Shown: piece after piece, positions 23,296 to 59,600 of the stretch
How positions within the stretch are numbered: position 1 is the first letter of the stretch
Layout of the letters: each line of letters opens with the position of its first letter
NCBI GenBank assembly: GCA_000708835.1
Contig: DF237321.1
Coordinates: 26,334-90,333 of the forward strand
Source of the DNA: Klebsormidium nitens
Taxonomy: Eukaryota > Plantae > Klebsormidiophyceae
Direction: 5' to 3'
DNA length: 64,000 nt
The notes under the pieces: generated by a model
Databases searched by the model: none
The model's input: only the letters and a program-made list of their open reading frames with translations
Told to the model about the DNA's origin: nothing
Translations under genes and position numbers: made by a program

Positions 23296-26200
23296 ATGTT
23301 CCATCTTCAGAGAGCAGCAGGTGAGACGCTTCCGCGCAATAGATGACTACTGACCTTGAGCAAGTTCTCAGACCACAGTAACAGAAGCAGCGGTTTACCT
23401 TTTGTTTGAAGTTCCCTTGGCGAAAGGTTTGCTCAGCTTGTTAGCTGCCAACTAAAGAACTCTTTAGGCAGTTGACGGTGTTTTGCGCCATCGAAGCGTG
23501 AGAAACCTGTAGTTTGTCTGCCGCTTGTTTCAAGTTTCATAGATTTGTACCCCTGTGTCATTCCCTTGTCCTTCTTCATCCACCGCCTCCACCTTAAACC
23601 GTTTCGAAGCCTGCACAAGTAACCAGTCAGTCACACCTCTCTCGCGCTCTACAAAGAACCATTCATCCTGAATCGGACTTTATCATCTCCCCTCTTCCAG
23701 GTGCCCGCCGCCGTTGCGCCCCCCGCTATCTTTCGACTTTTGCTCGAGCGTTCGCAAGCCCCAATCCGCAAGCCCCCGGCGAGTCTCAAGCTCGGCCTCC
23801 GTTCCCACCACTCAGAAGCCGCCACCCTGCGGAAGCGAATTCAACCCCCGATCACTCCCATAATGGCAGTGACGGAAACGGCTTCCGGGGTCCTTTGTCG
23901 CTGGAAGATACTAGAAGTGAAGCCCCAGGGGGGGGCGATTTGACACCGGAAAAGAGACCCCCGGTGGCTGCTGTGTTGGCTGAGATGCGCCAGAGGTTGA
24001 AGAGAGCCAACGGGAAGCGAGCGGGAACTGCCGGTGCAGCAACGGGGCCTTCAGACGGGCGGGCAGAGTCGTCTAAGAGGCAAGCTGCTATTATGGATGT
24101 TACGAGGAATAGAGAGCGGCCTCATCTCCCCGCTTTCAAGCACGCCCCCCCAATCGCGGTGCTATCTGCGCAGGCAGCGCAAAGTGCGGTGGAGCCCATT
24201 GCGAATGAACTGCTGACGCTTGAAGCGCCTTCCCTCAACACAGAAGTGTACCAAAGCACTCCTTCAGAAGTAGCGGGCAACGGCCAGTATAAGGCTACAG
24301 AACTGCACGACCGGTCTGGGTTTGACGACGAAATTAGCAGTTCCGTCGCCGGAGACTTGCTGTCGTTTCGTCAAAGTCCCCCCCAGAGCCTTCAAACGCA
24401 ACCTCCCCGGACCCCTCCTTCGGTGATATCTTCCTGGAGTCTTCCCCCGAGTCTTTTCCCTGGTCAAAAACCCTCCAAGAATTCTCCAGTTGAGGTGAGG
24501 CCAGAAAATCCCGATGCAGCCAGCAGTAGCGCCCCGCCAGACTCCCCAAACGGCCCAACTTCTCTGCGGAGGTTGCCTCCGATGAAGCTGCGGAGTCGCA
24601 GCCTGTTCAGACGGAAAGTGGGACTGGGCGGGGAGCGATCGGAAGACGGAGCCGGTTCGAGTGGTCGTGCGGACGAGGGCAGCCGTACGTTAAGCGACCG
24701 AAGCGCTTCGAGTGGGGAAAACGTTTCTAGAACCGCGGAGCCGAGTAGTGGGGAAACGGGAGGAGTTGGATGGAGCGCGACTGAGCGGAACGGAAGTAGT
24801 CTTGACGAGTCACAAGCAGCGGGAAGAGAAAGGCCCCTCGAGGGCGCGTTGAAAGGAGAACTTGAGGGGGCCATTCCGCTAACTGAGTGGATGCACGCTG
24901 CTAGAGCGTCGGAGCCGCTGCGCACTTCTGCAGATTCTAGGGGGTCACAGCCATTGAGTGTCCTAGAAAACGCGGAAGAGATTAGTTGTATAGAAAGCGC
25001 AGACTTGGATGTACAGAGGCTGTCTTTAGATGCAGACGACGATGCGCTCTTGACAGAGTGGTTAGGACCCTCTAACAGGTTTAGCGGAGCTCCGGAGAGC
25101 GAAGGGTTAGACCTAGATTCTTCCGGGTCATCAAGCTCTAGTCAGCAAACGGAAATAAGTCAAACGGAAGTCGAGAACGGCAGCCAGACAGCGGCGGGCA
25201 TTTTAGAAGCGGAGTTAAGGGGCGGAGGGGGGGAAGCGACGCCCCTAACCGAGTGGTTGACACCGTCGGGGGACGATACAGCGGTTCTTAGCCTAGACGA
25301 ATCCCCTGTGTCATCTTCCCAGGCGCCGCTCACAGAATGGCGGCCAGAAACAGGGCGGGACGGAGTTGGCGGCGCTAGTCGAGCTTCTTCAGAAACGAGA
25401 TTCCGGCTTCCGATTCCGTTGGTCGAACCAACTTCGAGCGTCCGGACTGGGCAGCGGGCCCAGTTTCGAAAGTTTTTGCCGAAGGTTTCGGACCGGCTCG
25501 CGTTTCGAGGTGAACTGCTTCCGAAAATGTCGCCGACCGTCGAGCAGGCCAATCGGACGTCGGATAATGCGAACGGTACAAACGCTTTAGGGCGTTCAGG
25601 AGCTTTAGATGATTCAGACAGTTCTGGGCGCTTTTCGGACGGGGCTCAAAGCATCTCAGACGCCTTTCATAGCAAACCCCAGAGCGGACCCCCTAGCCAA
25701 TCAAATGGCGCCCCCAGGGGTTCGGACAGCGCCTCAAGCGTTTCGGACGGGCCTCAAAGCTTTTCGGACGTTGCTGGTAGCCTTTCGGACGCGTCCCGGA
25801 GCCTTTCGGACGGCTCACAAGCAGTATCAGTCGTCTCAAAAAGCCTCTCGGACGCTTTTTCGCTCGCTTCGGACGGTCCCAAGACCGCGCCGGACGGTCC
25901 AAAGAGCGCTTCGGACGGTCCGGACGAGCAGCGGACGCCCGAGTGGTACGCGCTGCGGCGGTGGCGGCTGACTGCGAGCGCATTCGCGAGCGCGGTCGGG
26001 TTCTTCCCGGAGCAGCGGCTGCGACTGTGGGAGGAGAAACTAGAGCTGCGGGAGCCGTTCCGCGGGAACCAGGCGACCGTTTGGGGCACAAAACAGGTGG
26101 GTTACAGCTTGGGTTAAGGGGTAAAGCAGTTTAGATCCTCTGTTTTGAGTCTCTTCTGAGCAAGTAAGTTCAGATTCTTGGGATGAGAAATTGGAGTTAC

Positions 26201-51381: not shown

Positions 51382-52475
51382 TCACGTATATAGATCTTCT
51401 ACCACAGTGGGTGATCCTGCTCTAATTCGAAAATATCGTGCAAGAACGCCTCTGAATACAAACCCGCGCTTGTCATCTGTAAGGGGACATAGTACTGAAA
51501 AAACCAACATCAAAACAGTCCACCCTGCCGAGATTTCAGCAAAGAGGGTAAAGTAACTGATTGGCCAGACCTGTACAAGTTTCGTTTCTCCTCGTGGATC
51601 TAGCACGATCCGAGCCCGGGGTCGACCGTAAGGCCAACATGGTGGATTGCATTCACCAAAGTTAGGCCAGGAGTCCACCTTTGCAAAAGCTGCGCTTGTT
51701 GTCTTGGACCCATTCAAAAATACGCGGGTTGTCATACCAACCTCATATGCCCCATTGCTGTAATCATCGTAGTAACTCAGGTACCCTCTCCCAAGCAAGA
51801 GTGTCTCGTTCTCATAACTGGCTTGAATGCTTGCAAAGGAATTTACATTTGGCAGGCCAAATGCAGTCATCTGACACATCAATGTAATTCCATATTGATA
51901 CTTCTCATCTTTACCAACAACCATTTGCGAGTCCACAAAAACGCAGATGGAAGGATCATCTGTAACCCAGGTGTTATAATCTCCAGCATACTTGAAAAGA
52001 TAGGCCCTGGAAAACAGATTCGGGGTGTCGACAATCAATGGTATCCTCCGAGATCCTCCATTCAAACCGGTGCTTGCATATACTAGGCCTTGACCAGAAC
52101 TTACTGCGCCACTCCCCGCGCCAGTAGTCGCAGCTGTCTCCAACACACTGATGGCTCCCAGTGGGTTTGTCAAGGTGCACGTAAGCGAGATATTCACCAC
52201 TCTGTCAAGATAAGGTGACACTGGATTGGACCCCAGTCTACAGTGGCCGGCGCGCTATTAGTGTTGGTGACCAGACGCTGGCATATAGTAAACCCTGGAA
52301 ACACGGTTTTGGTTGTCGATATCGACACTGATGTGGGAGGATTTTCACTGCACTGATATGCAATCACAAACGCCATAGTGATAAACGGGACATATCCAAG
52401 GAGCAGAAGTCCAAAGATTAACCAAGCACATCTCCGTTGTGACTTTTCCACCGCTTGAGGGACTAGTACAGCCAT
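51382..52475 (-). CDS. Compact DEG/ENaC-like two-transmembrane protein; reading frame interrupted near 52200-52260
   Basis: ATG at 52475; TM1 AWLIFGLLLLGYVPFITMAFVIAY; then ENPPTSVSISTTKTVFPGFTIC (compare the DEG/ENaC 'FPAVTIC' signature). Cys-containing ectodomain, then ETKLVQVWPISYFTLFAEISAGWTVLMLVFSVL (compare the pre-TM2/TM2 'E..EQV.AY....LL.DIGG.LG'). Two overlapping frames (52194-52511 and 51382-52221). Confidence 0.6.
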
Positions 52476-52856
52476 CGTGATCCAGCTAGCAAGCGCAACC
52501 CCTGCCCACACCGCCTATACAGGCAAAGTTGGTGAATCAGCTAGTGGAACACCTCCCTTTTCAGCTGCTTGTGAGTGGTAGCTACTATGTATGGTTAGCT
52601 GTAAGGAACCTGAATATGAGTCGTTGATCTGCATAATGTGCACAGTATGATGACATCAATGCAGTCACGGCCAGTGCACAATCGCAATGCCTCACATTGG
52701 ACTTTCCGGAATAGATTATCCTCCTTCGAAAACACGGAGTTCCTGCAGTGACGGAAGCACACGTCATAGTCCGGAACGCGCTTTGCCAACGGTCAATGTT
52801 ACGAACCTCAAAAATCTTTCGGCATCGAAGATCGGTCCAAAAGGTCCTCGATAAAT

Positions 52857-52905
52857 CATGTTTTTGAAAGGCGGCGGCGGTCGGCGACCGCCTTTCGAAA
52901 ACATG
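52857..52905. repeat. 18-bp-arm inverted repeat
   Basis: CATGTTTTTGAAAGGCGG (52857-74) pairs with CCGCCTTTCGAAAACATG (52888-905), one mismatch. Confidence 0.8.
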
Positions 52906-53600
52906 TTTTACGATCATGACGTCCGATCCGCGATCGAGCGGCTCAGATTCACCTTCCGCGCGGTTCGGCCGAAAGTTATGACGTCAAAGTGTACCAAGTG
53001 TACCAGTTTGTACATCCACGTGGTCTCCGCCGAAACTGGCGATGCATTCGACAGCGGTTTTCCCAATGTGAACCCAGCTTCGGAACTCGTTGGTACAACG
53101 TCATCACACGTCATCTGGGTACAACTAAAAACAAAGCGAAAGTTGATCGAAAGCCCAATGTGAACCCTCTCCAGCTTTCTCCCAAATTTTTGCCTCCCTT
53201 ATTGACATGTCAACATGTTCCAAAAACGGTAAGGCATTTTTATTCGTGATCCTATTGGCCGAAACCCTTACCGGGTTGACCGGGTTGACCGAGATCGAAA
53301 TTCGAGCGACTAACCCCCTACTAACCCTAACAGATTCCCTGCTTCGAATACAAGAAACCCTTATAAACTCCACACGTAACCCTTCATCGCAAAATTTCTA
53401 AGGGGGAGGACATTCTAGTTCTTCCAGGGCGCTGAAATTCAGTGGGGGGCGCAAACTAATAAAGCGGTACAGGGGGGAAGGTTTCTTAGCTCGGACGGGT
53501 TACTTGTTAACCCAAGATCTTTGATACGCACGGGCAGACGGCAGGATCTTTTGCCAACGAATGGTGGCGGTCGATATTACCGTAATCGGCGGTCGCATAT

Positions 53601-54424
53601 GATTTGCCGACGAGTGGACTGCGGTCAAAAACTAGGACGACACAATCCGCCTTCGGCGGATTTAGCAGCTCGCCTCTTTATAGAAAGCATTATAAAATAG
53701 AAAAGCTTCAATGAGGGTGGGTGGGAGGGCGCCCCGATTCGCTTGCGTGGGGCGGGTGGGAGGGCAAGATTGATTCCCGTGCGGGCCCCGGTACAATATT
53801 GAGCATTTTAGGTTGCACTAAAACCAAAGATCTGAAGAGTTTCTAGTCACATCATATGAGACTCTTGCGTTTGGGTGGGTGGGAGGGCGCCCCGGTCTAA
53901 AGTATGATAGCAATTTTCATCTCAGAGCTGACCGGAGCAATACCCCACGCAGCAGTTTCCGATGTACTGCTAAAATCAGGCCAAACGCGGCCAAACGGAA
54001 ATTGTCGTGCGTCCCGGCACCGCCGGGAAAAATGGGTTAAACTGGCGCGTTAGACCTTAACACGATTCAAAGGTGAAAAAAGGAGCTTAAGGAAAAATCT
54101 CAAGTTGGTTTGCCCTTTCCCGAAAAAACCGCAAAAACACGGCGTTGGATTATGTCGTATGACGAGGAACGGCCCATTAGATCTTTTGGTTCTCGTTGGT
54201 AGGATTTTGCTGTACATTAAGGCCTTACTCACAGTGGATTTCACAGAATCCTAAACTTTTCGAAAATACACAGTATGACGCCACCGGCGAATTTAACCAC
54301 CTGACACGGTGACGTCGTACAGCGAAATAAAATGCCAGACGGACCCCACATCCGGATGACCGCTACAGCTCGCCCCATATAAGTATGGGCGAGCTAAAAA
54401 AAAAAAAAAAGATTTGCCGACGAG
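53601..54424 (+). mobile_element. Non-autonomous non-LTR retroposon (SINE-like or 5'-truncated LINE 3' UTR), 796 bp
   Basis: Exact 14-bp direct repeat GATTTGCCGACGAG at 53601-53614 and 54411-54424; A15 tail at 54396-54410 abutting the right copy; stem-loop AGCTCGCCC-CATA-TAAG-TATG-GGCGAGCT just before the tail; no recognisable protein ORF. Confidence 0.88.
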
Positions 54425-56638
54425 AGCCCGGGGCTAGGCCTCGGGGGACGATCTCTCAGTCGAGTCCGAACGGCGATTAAACTCCTGAGGCTGCAGGGTA
54501 TGTGGCTGCCGTCACGGTTGGGCCGGGGCGCTGTGATTCTGACCGGTAGGATGAATCCCCGAGAGTGATATGGCAAGTCATGGGACCATCGACGAGACAA
54601 GCCGCGGTTGTTTCTTTGGCCCTGTTACTGTTTACAGGCGCAGCGCTCTCGCCAGGGTCTCGCCACCGCTATGGCTTATAGTAATATCTCAATACCTATC
54701 TCAGTTTCAGTTGTTGCATGTAGGCCCTGCCCCGAAACGTCGCTGTAAGCGCTTGTCCTAGGGCACAAAGGTCAAAAAAGACACCTGTATTCCGTTAGTG
54801 CACCAAGTATTGTCCTGTGCACGGAATCCAGGCACGGAATGTCTTGTAATCATGTAAGTTAGATTTTCTAAATTTGCTCTGCATCTACAGACTACATAAA
54901 TACGAAAGCTTGTAACAACAAGATTTCCACTCGCATACGAGCGATGAGTAACAGTATCTGCATTTCCGACTCACAAATTGGAGCTGATAAGTTCGTGTTT
55001 GAAGTGTCGCCGTCATTGCGTTTGACAGGGTGGTAATCAAGAGGGCTGACAAGAGGAGACCCGCATTGCCTTGGCCGAAATTAGACAGCACTCTGCAATC
55101 AGTATTGCAGCTACATACAAGTACAGACGTAGTGAGAACCAATCTGCGGCAGCCCCGATTGTGGGTCAAGCCGGTGAGCATTGCATCTGCATGCACGAGG
55201 TCGAAGGAGATGGAACGGCTGGGGCTTTAATGATAGCTGGGACTGATGCTTGGTGCAAAATGTGGCCATTAGAGTGCCGGCGTGTTCTGAGAGGTGATCT
55301 ACCATGAAGATTGAGCTCAGGTTAGAATGCTGGTAAGTTGCTGAGGTAACCAACCTACCCATGCCCTTTCCAGGCTCCTGAGTCTTTCAGGCCGGAAGCG
55401 GGTGAGAGAAGTGTGCTCAATTTTCAGCTGACTACAAGAACCTGATTACAGCCCTGAGCCGACCAAAATGGACCAGCTCTGTGTGGCACATGATACCAGG
55501 GCCCTTATCAACAGCCCTTGATATGGCATCTTGTGAAAGTTTCTCTATGATCCTACAGAAAACCACCTGAACTACCGCTTCAGAACTATTGCAGCCAGGC
55601 GTTGCTCTTTTGTGGTTGCACCAACGGTGAACTTTTGGTCAACATTGCATGTTTCGTTGAGAAACAATTTAGCTGCTAAGATCCAATACCTCAGAAGTGT
55701 AGCTCCGAAATCAAAAGTTGCTTGACGCCTAAGAGCTGCGGGACGTGACACTGGACGGGAGCACTAATCTGAGGTGCAGGTAATCACAAGATTTAGTCTC
55801 AGGCCGAAATCTTGCTCTGATTCCACCAGGTAGAAAATGTTGATGATTAGCGGACTACCGCAAGCAGGACGAAAGTGACGTTTCTGGATCATCAACCAGG
55901 CGCTGGGGACAAGGTAAGATGCAAAAGTGCTGTGCATCAATCCGCTTTCTGTGCCAGAATCTTTTGGAGCATCACAGACAATGGCACTTTCGCTGTCAGT
56001 AGTTCTCAATCAAGAATTAAATGTGGGATTGAAGAAGTTAGCTACTTGCCTAACCCCTTCCCTCAAAGACAATGGCATTCAAGACTATGTCTGCATACTC
56101 TCACATAACAGTAATACTCGTTCAGAAAGCCCTACGATTGTATGCTTACTGCAACAAAACAAGCACTGTGACAGCAAACAGGAGTACCTGGTCAAGAGCC
56201 TGAGACGACAACGAAGCTACGCCAAAGAGAATCCCAGATTCACATCTCAATCCTCAATGTCCCGCCCTCCACTTGTTCAAGCACCCCGTGATTTTGAACC
56301 ATCTTTCACCTAGTATCATGCTGCATAGTAAATCACAGGATCCCTAACTCACCACTTTCAAATTCTTCAATATCCTCTGACAGAAATAAGGTTCGGACCC
56401 CACACTGATTCTCAGAAGTGAAAGTAGGAGCAAAAGATCAATCTTCGAGTTCCTACAGAGTTCACATCACAAGCAAACGCTCTTCAGACCATTCTTATTA
56501 TCCCCAAGCTCTTTATGCATTCTTTGCCTCGTCCGAATGCTTCAGTTCGTCAAAAGATTGAGACCCGAAAGCTGCCTCACAGTCTTAGTCTGAACAACAG
56601 CTCAATTGACGACACTTGGAATCCCTCAACTTTGCAGC

Positions 56639-59600
56639 ATGGAGCATCAGGCCGCCCTCGAATCCCTCCTCGAAGTCTACGAGGCCCTACGCAAGGCCGT
56701 TCGTGCGCAACTAGACGGGACCGGCTCTCACGCGGTGCACCGCGGCCGGGCGGATCTCCAGGCCCGTGCCATCCGCGAAGCTCTACAAGTTCTCGCGGCG
56801 GAAACGAGCGCTCTCGAGGGGGGGCCGCAGGACGGGGGCAGAACGCCCCCCCCTGGCGAGAAGGAAACGAAACTGTTGCAGGGGCACGTGCAGGTTTTCC
56901 AGGCGCTGTGGGAACACATTTCGGGGGAGCTGGTCCTGTGTCTCGGCCAGGCGGATCTGCCGGAAGTCGCGGGGTTGCTGCAGTGCGCGCAGGAGAGCCA
57001 CTCCGACTTTCTGAAGAGAGTCAGCTGGCCGGCCGCGGTTCCCGCGACCCCGCCCCCCCAGAACGATTTGCGCGAAAGCGCGGGGAAGGAGCAGATACAG
57101 GTCCTCGTGTTGGAGAACCAGAGGTTGCAGAGGACGATCCAAGAGCTTGCGGGGTGGGGGAACCCTGGGCCACTGGAAAAGCCCCCTCCGCTAGTTATCC
57201 CCCCCACCCCAGCAACTCCGGGGGGCAGCGTTGACCCGGGGTCGTTCTCGCCCTCGCCCCAGAACCCCAACCCCCGGAAAAGCGAAGCGCTCGCCGCGCC
57301 GCTGCTTTTGCAGAGGCCCCGCGCGCGCACCGAGGACATGACTCTGCTTCAGGGGGATAGCGGGGTGCCGAAGAGGCCTTCGCCCAAGGCGTTTCTACCC
57401 CCCGGGAACGGAGTCGAACGAGCGCCCGCCGATCAAGATAGGGCGGGCGCAAGCGGTAGAGAAGCCTCGGAAGGCCTGCACAGGGCCCGCACGCTCGGCG
57501 CTGACGTCAGCGACAAGCACGCCGACGTCAGCAACCGCCTGCAACGGAGCGCGTCCACGCGGGTCACACCCAATGCTGACGTCAGCGGGGCGGGGGGAGG
57601 GGGGGAGGCACGTGCCTCCAAGGCCGGGAGGAAATCGGCGACTGCCGCCGCTTTGCGAGCGAGCGCGGAGCAAATGTTGGGATCGTTCCGGAGGATGTTG
57701 CACACGTCGGGGGGGGCGGGGGGCGGTTCGGACCTTCCGGGGGGGGAGGTAGTGGAAGCGGCGAAGACAAAAGCGCTGGGTTCGATTATGCGAGGAAACT
57801 CGTGGTTCGGCAAGGAGGGCAACGGGCGGCTGAAATCGAGACAAGACGGCGCGATCGGACGGACGAGATCGAACACGGTGGCGGGGTACAAAACGTCGCC
57901 CCGAAGGACACCTTCCGGACGGATAACGCCACGGACGACCCCCCCAGAACAAGCACAGCACCCGACGTTTTCTCTGTCAAGGGGGGTTGCGCGGCAGTCA
58001 ATGTCAAGCCCTGTCCCACCCCCCGAGACAGCGAATCCTGCCGCCAGTCCGCGGTTTGACTTCTCCCCCCCACTCAGTCCGAGCCAAGCAGACATTCCTG
58101 ACGGCTGGGAACGCTTCGCCGAGGTGTCGATCCCTTCCACCCCACGAGGGGAAGTGGGGATCTGGAGTATCGCGCCAACCCCCACCGCTGCGAGGGCGGC
58201 GCTTATCGCCGCAACGGGGGGCTCCGCGGCCCTGCTAGAAAGGGGGGGGGGCGCCAATCTGCCGCTTGGGGAACAGCCCACCAACGTTTCTCCGGGGGGA
58301 AAGGTCGCGGTTCTCATTCCGGGCCCTTTTCGGTCGGAAAAGCCGTTGCAAAACTTCCCCTCCGAAAGTGCACGGGAGGACGCTCCGGGGGGAGCCGAGC
58401 AGAGCGAGCCACAGCCCGGATTTACCCCCCCTGGACCCGGTTTTTCGTCATCCGGAAACGGCTTCACCCCCCCAGGACAGGGGTCGACGATCGGCATGAT
58501 CAGCGAACCACCAGTCCAATGGGAAATGCAAGACGCGGCTGAACACGATCTGAGAAACATTCCAGAGACAGAAAATGACGAGGCGGCGAATCTGGGGGAG
58601 GGGAGTGCTGAGCCCGCGGCCATCGACAGCGAGTACTTCTCTCATCCCGAAGATGACGTCAGCGCCGCAAACGGAGGCGAGCACGATAATTCAGAGACGG
58701 GGGTCTCCCCCTGCTCCGAAAGAATCCTAGCGCTGCGAGACCGGTTGTTAGGCGACCAGGAAAGCCTTCCAAAGCTCAGCCAGTCGCCGCAGAACCGGCT
58801 CAGCGGCCGCGGCTCGTCCTCAGAGCGACACGTGTCCTCCGACGAGCGCGAGAACAAGGACCCGTTTGAAGGAAGCAGCCAGCGGATGGCGAAAAATGGG
58901 GGGGCGCTGGAGAGGGGAAGAAGTGCCCCCCAGCAAAAGCTGGCTCCAGGGGGCGGGTTCATGAGGCGGATGTCGCTCAAGGAGCTGAAGGTTCTGATCG
59001 AAGAAGTGTACGCTTCCAAGGTGGGCTATCCATCTTTGCTGGCTGTCTGAGAGGTAGCGCTTTCTCTTCGTCTCTCGTCTGTTCTCTTTCCTTGTCAAGT
59101 CTGCTGTGAGAACGCTGGTCGCACAGTAAGTCTAACCACACTATGTCCAGATGAACATTCGCTTTGTCAGGTGTCATTCGGAACGCGCTATCCGTGGGAA
59201 CTCGGGAACATTGACTCAAGGTCAACGGCTTCGGAGTACAAAAGCAGCCGACTTCGGAGTAGAAAAGCAGCCGCTAATGAAGTACTGATTGTTGGAGCTA
59301 GTCAATTACTGCTAAAAAATTTACTTTGAGTGAATTATTACATTGATGGTCAGAGAAACTCATCAGGAAGTGCCTCCTTGATAGTGAAGCCCGCATCGTG
59401 GTCCGTCGCGTGCGGCCTGCCAAAGAAATGGAGTGGGGCCCGGAATGCTCTCAAAAGCTAGAACGTAGGGTTCGCGCGACCTTTCTCGCCTCTTCAAACG
59501 CCCGTACAAAAGGTTACAAAGCCTCACTGAAAGGCGTCCCGAGTTGTTACCAGGAGAAACGCGACACGTAGTGCCTCGCTTGCGGTCTGCCCAAACACAG

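Follow-up and report, generated by a model that had tools for sequence, protein, structure and literature searches.

An unannotated relative of KFL_003130010 with a broken reading frame in Klebsormidium nitens, and its limited likeness to DEG/ENaC channels

Here we describe a locus of 1094 nt on the minus strand (52475-51382) of a 64,000-nt stretch of Klebsormidium nitens DNA (assembly GCA_000708835.1, contig DF237321.1, positions 26,334 to 90,333), which we call the window and to which all coordinates refer. An earlier note on this DNA had read the locus as an essentially intronless DEG/ENaC-like channel gene encoding a single protein of about 360 residues. Our analysis indicates that it is probably an unannotated, intron-free paralogue of the K. 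nitens gene KFL_003130010, with one frame break, in an orphan family of two-pass membrane proteins known only from Klebsormidium. What is new is this second, broken and unannotated copy in a Klebsormidium-restricted orphan family; its practical value is small and consists of a missing gene or pseudogene annotation and one more sequence for the family alignment.

The length of the locus is not divisible by three, and its coding sequence is distributed over two open reading frames (ORFs).

52197..52475, minus strand: ORF A, with ATG at 52475 and 93 codons followed by TGA at 52196-52194; it encodes a short basic N-terminus, the first predicted transmembrane helix (TM1) and the strand after TM1
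51385..52221, minus strand: ORF B, 279 codons in another frame than ORF A, with stop TGA at 51384-51382; it encodes the bulk of the ectodomain, the second predicted transmembrane helix (TM2) and a basic C-terminal tail with terminal DLYT
52197..52254, minus strand: interval of the frame change, 1 nt short or 2 nt extra

The earlier note overlooked this break. The intronless gene of about 360 codons that it described exists only if the break is ignored, as the frame of the start codon stops after 93 codons and the other 279 lie in a different frame. ORF A and ORF B were searched as separate pieces. In BLASTP comparisons, ORF A matched residues 1-69 of KFL_003130010 (36% identity, E 1e-10) and ORF B matched residues 137-338 (30% identity, E 1e-28). 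Because both pieces match the same protein in order, they form one gene. A chance ORF was rejected, since the match to the paralogue marks the locus as coding sequence; the frame of ORF B is already open from 52254, and an open frame of 289 codons has a probability of about 2e-7 at the local base composition. By these sequence comparisons, the locus is real coding sequence, one gene in two frames. No public gene model was found, with no self-match in three protein-database searches and with the exact pieces absent from a 15-billion-sequence collection; no protein in the public sets searched contains either piece, and the locus is therefore unannotated.

KFL_003130010 (GAQ86813.1; A0A1Y1I8F4_KLENI; P0003) is a hypothetical protein of 338 residues. 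ORF B alone had no match in a word-indexed protein search. Searching 1.84 billion representative sequences with ORF B in phmmer gave one real match (P0001, E 3.5e-8), a 106-residue C-terminal fragment from a 565-nt ENA metagenome contig (ERZ23789742). The other match (P0002) was judged spurious, being a 469-residue tandem-repeat protein aligned in six short stretches. A profile built from ORF B and P0001 reached KFL_003130010 with E 1.1e-59. With KFL_003130010 itself as the query, the protein search returned that protein alone, and none of the 97 pattern matches in a metagenome scan was a relative. Within the window, we found neither a further paralogue nor DNA in common with the contig that carries KFL_003130010.

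The locus and KFL_003130010 are collinear from Met1 to the C-terminal DLYT, with which both proteins end. They have in common RRxAW before TM1, the stretch PTSxSI...FPGxTxCxR, four ectodomain cysteines, the ASYENxT and NG[ST] sequons, RGETxxxQxWPxS and the TM2 pattern AxW...LxF..LxP. The two differ in that the locus is intron-free, whereas the KFL_003130010 gene spans 1969 nt and is divided into three exons by two introns (438 and 514 nt) that have GT[AG]AGC donors and T-rich acceptors. Compared with KFL_003130010, the locus also codes for about 30 more residues early in the outer domain and for an additional CNPPC loop, contains the frame break and is unannotated. The environmental contig ERZ23789742 (1-565) is an orthologue of the last KFL_003130010 exon (87-88% identical), and its frame closes just 5' of ETVASW, which is the position of K. 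nitens intron 2. Therefore, a second Klebsormidium-like organism carries the gene with the same intron position.

From these comparisons, a protein of the family would have about 340-365 residues. Its N-terminus would be short and basic, and the first membrane helix and the conserved strand PTSxSI...FPGxTxC would come next. The outer domain after them would be rich in sheet and N-glycosylated and would contain four conserved cysteines; from it, the conserved strand RGETxxxQxWPxS would lead into the second helix and a basic tail with DLYT. An intact member may be a two-pass glycoprotein of the cell surface or of endomembranes. The features of the present locus are as follows.

52353..52427, minus strand: predicted TM1, AWLIFGLLLLGYVPFITMAFVIAYQ, with hydropathy above 1.6 over 19-residue windows
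52281..52343, minus strand: post-TM1 motif, NPPTSVSISTTKTVFPGFTIC, the sole DEG/ENaC-like part
51802..51810, minus strand: N-glycosylation sequon NET, which is NGT in the paralogue, within ASYENxT
51706..51714, minus strand: N-glycosylation sequon NGS, which is NGT in the paralogue
51520..51588, minus strand: pre-TM2 motif, ETKLVQVWPISYFTLFAEISAGW, with the family-conserved core RGETxxxQxWPxS...AxW
51484..51552, minus strand: predicted TM2, FTLFAEISAGWTVLMLVFSVLCP, which contains no G/S-x-S triplet

Several observations of the earlier note hold in this layout. Both peptides that it quoted, NPPTSVSISTTKTVFPGFTIC and ETKLVQVWPISYFTLFAEISAGW, are encoded on the minus strand at 52343-52281 and 51588-51520, and hydropathy finds one helix in each piece (52427-52353 and 51552-51484), in agreement with its two predicted transmembrane helices. 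The short termini are likewise present and are basic, with three Lys or Arg residues before TM1 and six after TM2 on the presumed cytoplasmic side. The loop contains three N-x-S/T sequons. On the basis of hydropathy, the basic flanks and the two conserved loop sequons, we predict two transmembrane helices with the N- and C-terminus both in the cytoplasm.

We also noticed a 27-nt internal echo between 52005-52031 and 52293-52319 (74% identity, 288 nt apart), pairing codons for TTKTVFPG, after TM1, with codons for DTPNLFSR in the ectodomain. This likeness is probably due to chance.

Position of the frame break and state of the gene

The KFL_003130010 protein was aligned to the DNA by dynamic programming, with frameshifts or GT-AG introns of 40-400 nt allowed. 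The best overall path makes a single 2-nt skip at 52199/52198 (score 337) and reads ILTE before and VNISLTC after the skip, opposite FLTE-TDVRFRC in the paralogue. The best intron-only path runs from 52241 to 52138 (104 nt) and has a lower score of 319. Along the frameshift path, all four ectodomain cysteines of the paralogue obtain partners, whereas the intron paths cut out SLTC, which pairs with RFRC, so losing a conserved cysteine. A pyrimidine tract is missing from all candidate acceptors, in contrast to the T-rich acceptors of the two introns of the paralogue, neither of which is present at this locus. The alignment with the paralogue therefore favors a single frame break over an intron. 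As assembled, the break would lie in the first fifth of the outer domain, and translation from the ATG would end after 93 residues.

Considering the state of the gene, we lean toward a young pseudogene. The contrary reading, in which the gene is intact in the organism and either an assembly indel or a short intron accounts for the apparent break, is the less probable one but carries real weight: the lesion is alone in 1094 nt, and the start, the stop and every family motif are kept. A homopolymer scan of 52254-52197 found one run only, a G4 at 52234-52231, which sits inside the permissive interval. With the break at this run, the alignment score falls by only about 8 units and the ectodomain has six cysteines, an even number; an assembly in which one G was undercalled is thus a plausible alternative. 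Several GT-AG pairs would also leave the frame open. These points are countered by the best alignment, which sets the break at a non-homopolymer site, by the lower score, lost cysteine and lacking pyrimidine tracts of the intron paths, by the absence of a public gene model at the locus, and by a GC content at third codon positions (GC3, given below) that bears no sign of codon-usage pressure. Of the two ways in which the young pseudogene could prove the wrong description, an indel introduced by the assembly into an intact gene, at the G4 run for example, is possible although rather unlikely, and a short intron or another cause is a little less likely again.

The position of the break also sets the cysteine count. 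The six ectodomain cysteines of the earlier note are obtained if the break lies at the G4 run, but the count is seven if it lies at 52199/52198.

Comparison with the DEG/ENaC family

DEG/ENaC channels carry an HG gating motif in the N-terminus before TM1 and a TM2 with a G/S-x-S selectivity filter preceded by GxxGLxxG. The ectodomain spans roughly 370 residues or more in ASIC and ENaC proteins and contains about 14 conserved cysteines in ASIC. Our data indicate that, as judged by its sequence, the locus is not a demonstrable member of this family. The likeness consists of two predicted transmembrane helices with cytoplasmic ends, an architecture that agrees with that of DEG/ENaC proteins, and of the strand FPxxTxC after TM1 (beta1), which reads FPGFTIC about 15 residues after TM1 here and FPGITTC in the paralogue.

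The Pfam family ASC (PF00858), with a curated cut-off of 23.6 bits, was the top Pfam match of ORF A, in which residues 11-67 aligned to profile positions 17-75 (E 0.0096, 15.4 bits), and of residues 1-100 of the paralogue, in which residues 19-71 aligned to positions 22-78 (E 0.0029, 17.2 bits). The ENaC profile TIGR00859, with a cut-off of 428 bits, gave E 0.0031 and 16.1 bits for ORF A and E 0.07 and 11.6 bits for the paralogue. When a profile of the family was compared with 177,635 distinct PDB sequences, the sole match was human ENaC beta (9blr_B) at a non-significant E of 1.2, with FPGxTxC aligned on FPAVTIC; neither ORF A nor ORF B, searched singly against the PDB sequences, had a match at E <=10. 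All of the ASC and ENaC matches come down to one feature of about 55 residues, helix 1 and the FPGxTxC strand. SBF, an unrelated transmembrane family, scores like ASC on ORF A (E 0.011), and the helix therefore drives part of the ASC score.

Over the remaining three quarters of its length, where the pre-TM2 and TM2 parts lie, the protein gave no ASC, PDB or other profile match at E <=10. Nothing is alignable past residue 70, and no alignment to the C-terminal positions of the ASC profile was obtained at E <=10; hence, the resemblance to the LL.DIGG landmark that the earlier note saw at the pre-TM2 and TM2 region is without any profile support at this threshold. The HG motif is found neither in the 16-residue N-terminus MAVLVPQAVEKSQRRC nor in the paralogue. 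The G/S-x-S filter and the GxxGLxxG stretch (GxxGLxxGxS with the filter) are absent from TM2 of the locus (FTLFAEISAGWTVLMLVFSVLCP) and of the paralogue (IISQVLAAWASIALAFGLLFP); in this point, the note was right to describe TM2 as having no obvious filter. The ectodomain, at about 265 residues, is smaller than that of ASIC and ENaC proteins, and it lacks a cysteine-rich thumb, with six or seven cysteines, four of them common with the paralogue.

We do not accept DEG/ENaC membership because several of the defining features were looked for and are lacking. The two-pass architecture, the FPAVTIC-like strand and the rank of ASC as the top N-terminal match in the earlier proposal of a DEG/ENaC relative are borne out, but every score behind it is below its cut-off or non-significant. 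That the protein is nevertheless a true, strongly reduced DEG/ENaC member, a trimeric cation channel with an altered TM2, appears improbable to us. This reading draws on the recurrence of ASC as the best Pfam match at the same profile positions in both proteins, on the TIGR00859 values and on ENaC beta as the sole PDB match. It is opposed by the distance of these scores from the cut-offs, by the equal score of SBF, by the unmatched 75% of the protein, by the missing motifs and cysteines, and by the structure and feature neighbors described below, in which ASIC/ENaC chains and ASC clusters are missing. Outside animals, Deg/ENaC homologues have been reported from heterokonts and one filasterean relative only (PMC10507113); according to a survey that used PF00858, land plants have none (PMC12806904).

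Fold and possible function

Structural models of the family were of low confidence. AlphaFold2 (AF2) gave a predicted local distance difference test (pLDDT) of 34.6 for ORF B alone and of 41.3, with a predicted template-modeling score (pTM) of 0.31, for the intact KFL_003130010 protein with a four-row alignment. The latter model is informative only about the succession of secondary-structure elements, which begins with TM1 and continues with a long strand carrying FPGITTC, a mainly beta domain and a strand leading into TM2. A Foldseek search of the PDB with this model gave no match at E <=0.001; chains of the PAC/ASOR channel occupied ranks 1, 2, 5, 8, and 10, with non-significant E values of 0.05-0.1 and template-modeling (TM) scores of 0.14-0.17. 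Re-alignment with VIA placed PAC chains at ranks 1-8, again not significantly. The PAC matches had a root mean square deviation of 18 Å or covered the two helices alone, and a VIA search of 48,161 chains, which was independent of Foldseek, returned helical hairpins only. No ASIC/ENaC chains were listed in the structure searches with these low-confidence models. Because the AF2 models are too poor for fold assignment, we do not treat the Foldseek search, the wide VIA search or the VIA re-alignment as evidence.

The ESM Atlas model of KFL_003130010 was also of low confidence (pLDDT 0.57, pTM 0.47). Its structural neighbors were uncharacterized Mucoromycota proteins (TM scores 0.51/0.60), the ciliate Y80K_N family, ERGIC_N/COPII-coated-ERV clusters (0.48/0.54 and 0.51/0.38, from low-confidence models) and TMEM206 (0.46/0.43 over 227 residues, likewise from low-confidence models). 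The feature neighbors were headed by three Mucoromycota transmembrane clusters (0.93-0.95), followed by Y80K_N (PF27811), and TMEM206 stood at rank 20 (0.86). No ASC cluster appeared among the structural or feature neighbors of KFL_003130010. The Mucoromycota and Y80K_N neighbors hint at a wider eukaryotic two-pass family whose members sequence searches do not link, as far as such models can be read.

In the profile searches, PF15122 (PAC/TMEM206) had no match at E <=10 in either piece or in the paralogue, and the same was true of PF13850 (ERGIC_N) and PF07970 (COPIIcoated_ERV). The earlier note had also mentioned the P2X fold; P2X membership was rejected, as there was no match to the P2X profile (PF00864).

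The models are equally compatible with a PAC/ASIC-like design and with a non-channel design of the Erv41 type. Were a single mechanism to be named, the most likely one, which we put forward tentatively, would be an oligomeric pore of PAC/ASIC design lined by TM2. The related reading that the family has only the superfold of PAC (TMEM206) and ASIC, forming an oligomeric channel without sequence membership in either family, seems doubtful. It accords with the likeness to PAC/TMEM206/ASOR (7jna, 7sqg, 7ji3) in size class and topology, namely about 350 residues, two transmembrane helices and a sheet-rich glycosylated ectodomain (here a prediction), with the top ranks of PAC/ASOR in Foldseek and in the VIA re-alignment, and with the TMEM206 cluster near the paralogue in the ESM Atlas. 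It is set back by the complete lack of sequence or profile similarity to PF15122, by a first structural rank that is non-significant and derives from a model of pLDDT 41, and by the hairpins that were the only result of the wide VIA search. A non-channel two-pass glycoprotein, such as a cargo receptor that resembles Erv41/ERGIC and acts in the early secretory pathway, or a sensor or adhesion protein at the cell surface, we consider unlikely, although the Erv41/Erv46/ERGIC proteins also have two terminal transmembrane helices around a beta-sandwich lumenal domain, their clusters match the Atlas model of the paralogue on a par with PAC (TM scores up to 0.48-0.54), and none of the best feature neighbors, the Mucoromycota proteins and the Y80K_N family, is a known channel. 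Here the motifs differ, PF13850 and PF07970 are without matches, and the models compared are of low confidence.

The prevailing view takes DEG/ENaC and PAC channels for animal inventions, with a few outliers among protists (PMC10507113), and holds that land plants lack them (PMC12806904). If true, a streptophyte relative would shift the view of where this channel design arose and would open up a new class of candidate ion channels to plant biology. The present locus does not establish such a relative, as the ENaC likeness of its family stops at helix 1 and the next strand. It would be a long shot that the break is an assembly error, that the gene is intact and expressed, and that the locus and KFL_003130010 represent the first trimeric ENaC/ASIC-PAC design of Archaeplastida, anciently related to the known channels of this design. 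Under such an ancient kinship, TM1 with the FPxxTxC strand would be the last trace left in the sequence, perhaps common to the Mucoromycota and ciliate families as well. We found no literature naming KFL_003130010, and no report of such an algal TMEM206 relative was apparent in the parts seen of the literature mentioning TMEM206 and algae.

Base composition and surrounding window

The third codon positions of the locus are AT-richer than those of the genes it was compared with, as the earlier note had stated: GC3 is 0.48 in ORF A and 0.44 in ORF B, versus 0.71 in the KFL_003130010 coding sequence and 0.72 in the neighboring large ORF. The flanking non-coding DNA has a GC content of 0.42-0.50, which is the same level as the GC3 of the locus and is expected without selection on codon usage. 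The note had taken the locus as possibly acquired by horizontal transfer. An origin of this kind, for example from an animal or a protist, is consistent with the intron-free state and with the AT-richer third positions, but we regard it as very improbable and rejected it. All relatives that could be detected are of Klebsormidium type: the K. nitens gene KFL_003130010, which has two spliceosomal introns and a GC3 like that of the host, and its environmental orthologue; no sequence of a candidate donor lineage appeared among the 1.84 billion representatives, and the low GC3 equals the local background.

An Rfam scan of the window found nothing, and a scan for bacterial-type promoters and terminators gave results at chance level. 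Some 380-435 nt upstream of the start codon of the locus, there is a near-perfect inverted repeat (52852-52910) with 23-nt arms that are 91% complementary and a 13-nt spacer. Between 53715 and 53894, a G-rich 22-nt unit, GGGTGGGTGGGAGGGCGCCCCG, occurs twice (at 53715 and 53873, 100% identity), with a 16-nt third copy at 53750; the composition of this repeat is G-quadruplex-like.

Two long open frames lie on the plus strand of the window. The frame at 23895-26117 has 740 codons, no Pfam match and a flat GC content over the three codon positions (0.61/0.58/0.58). The other, at 56606-59050, is the neighboring large ORF mentioned above, a GC-rich, low-complexity frame of 814 codons with no Pfam match. 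It ends at a splice-donor-like AAG followed by GTAGGT and, with such an end, probably represents a single large exon of an orphan gene.
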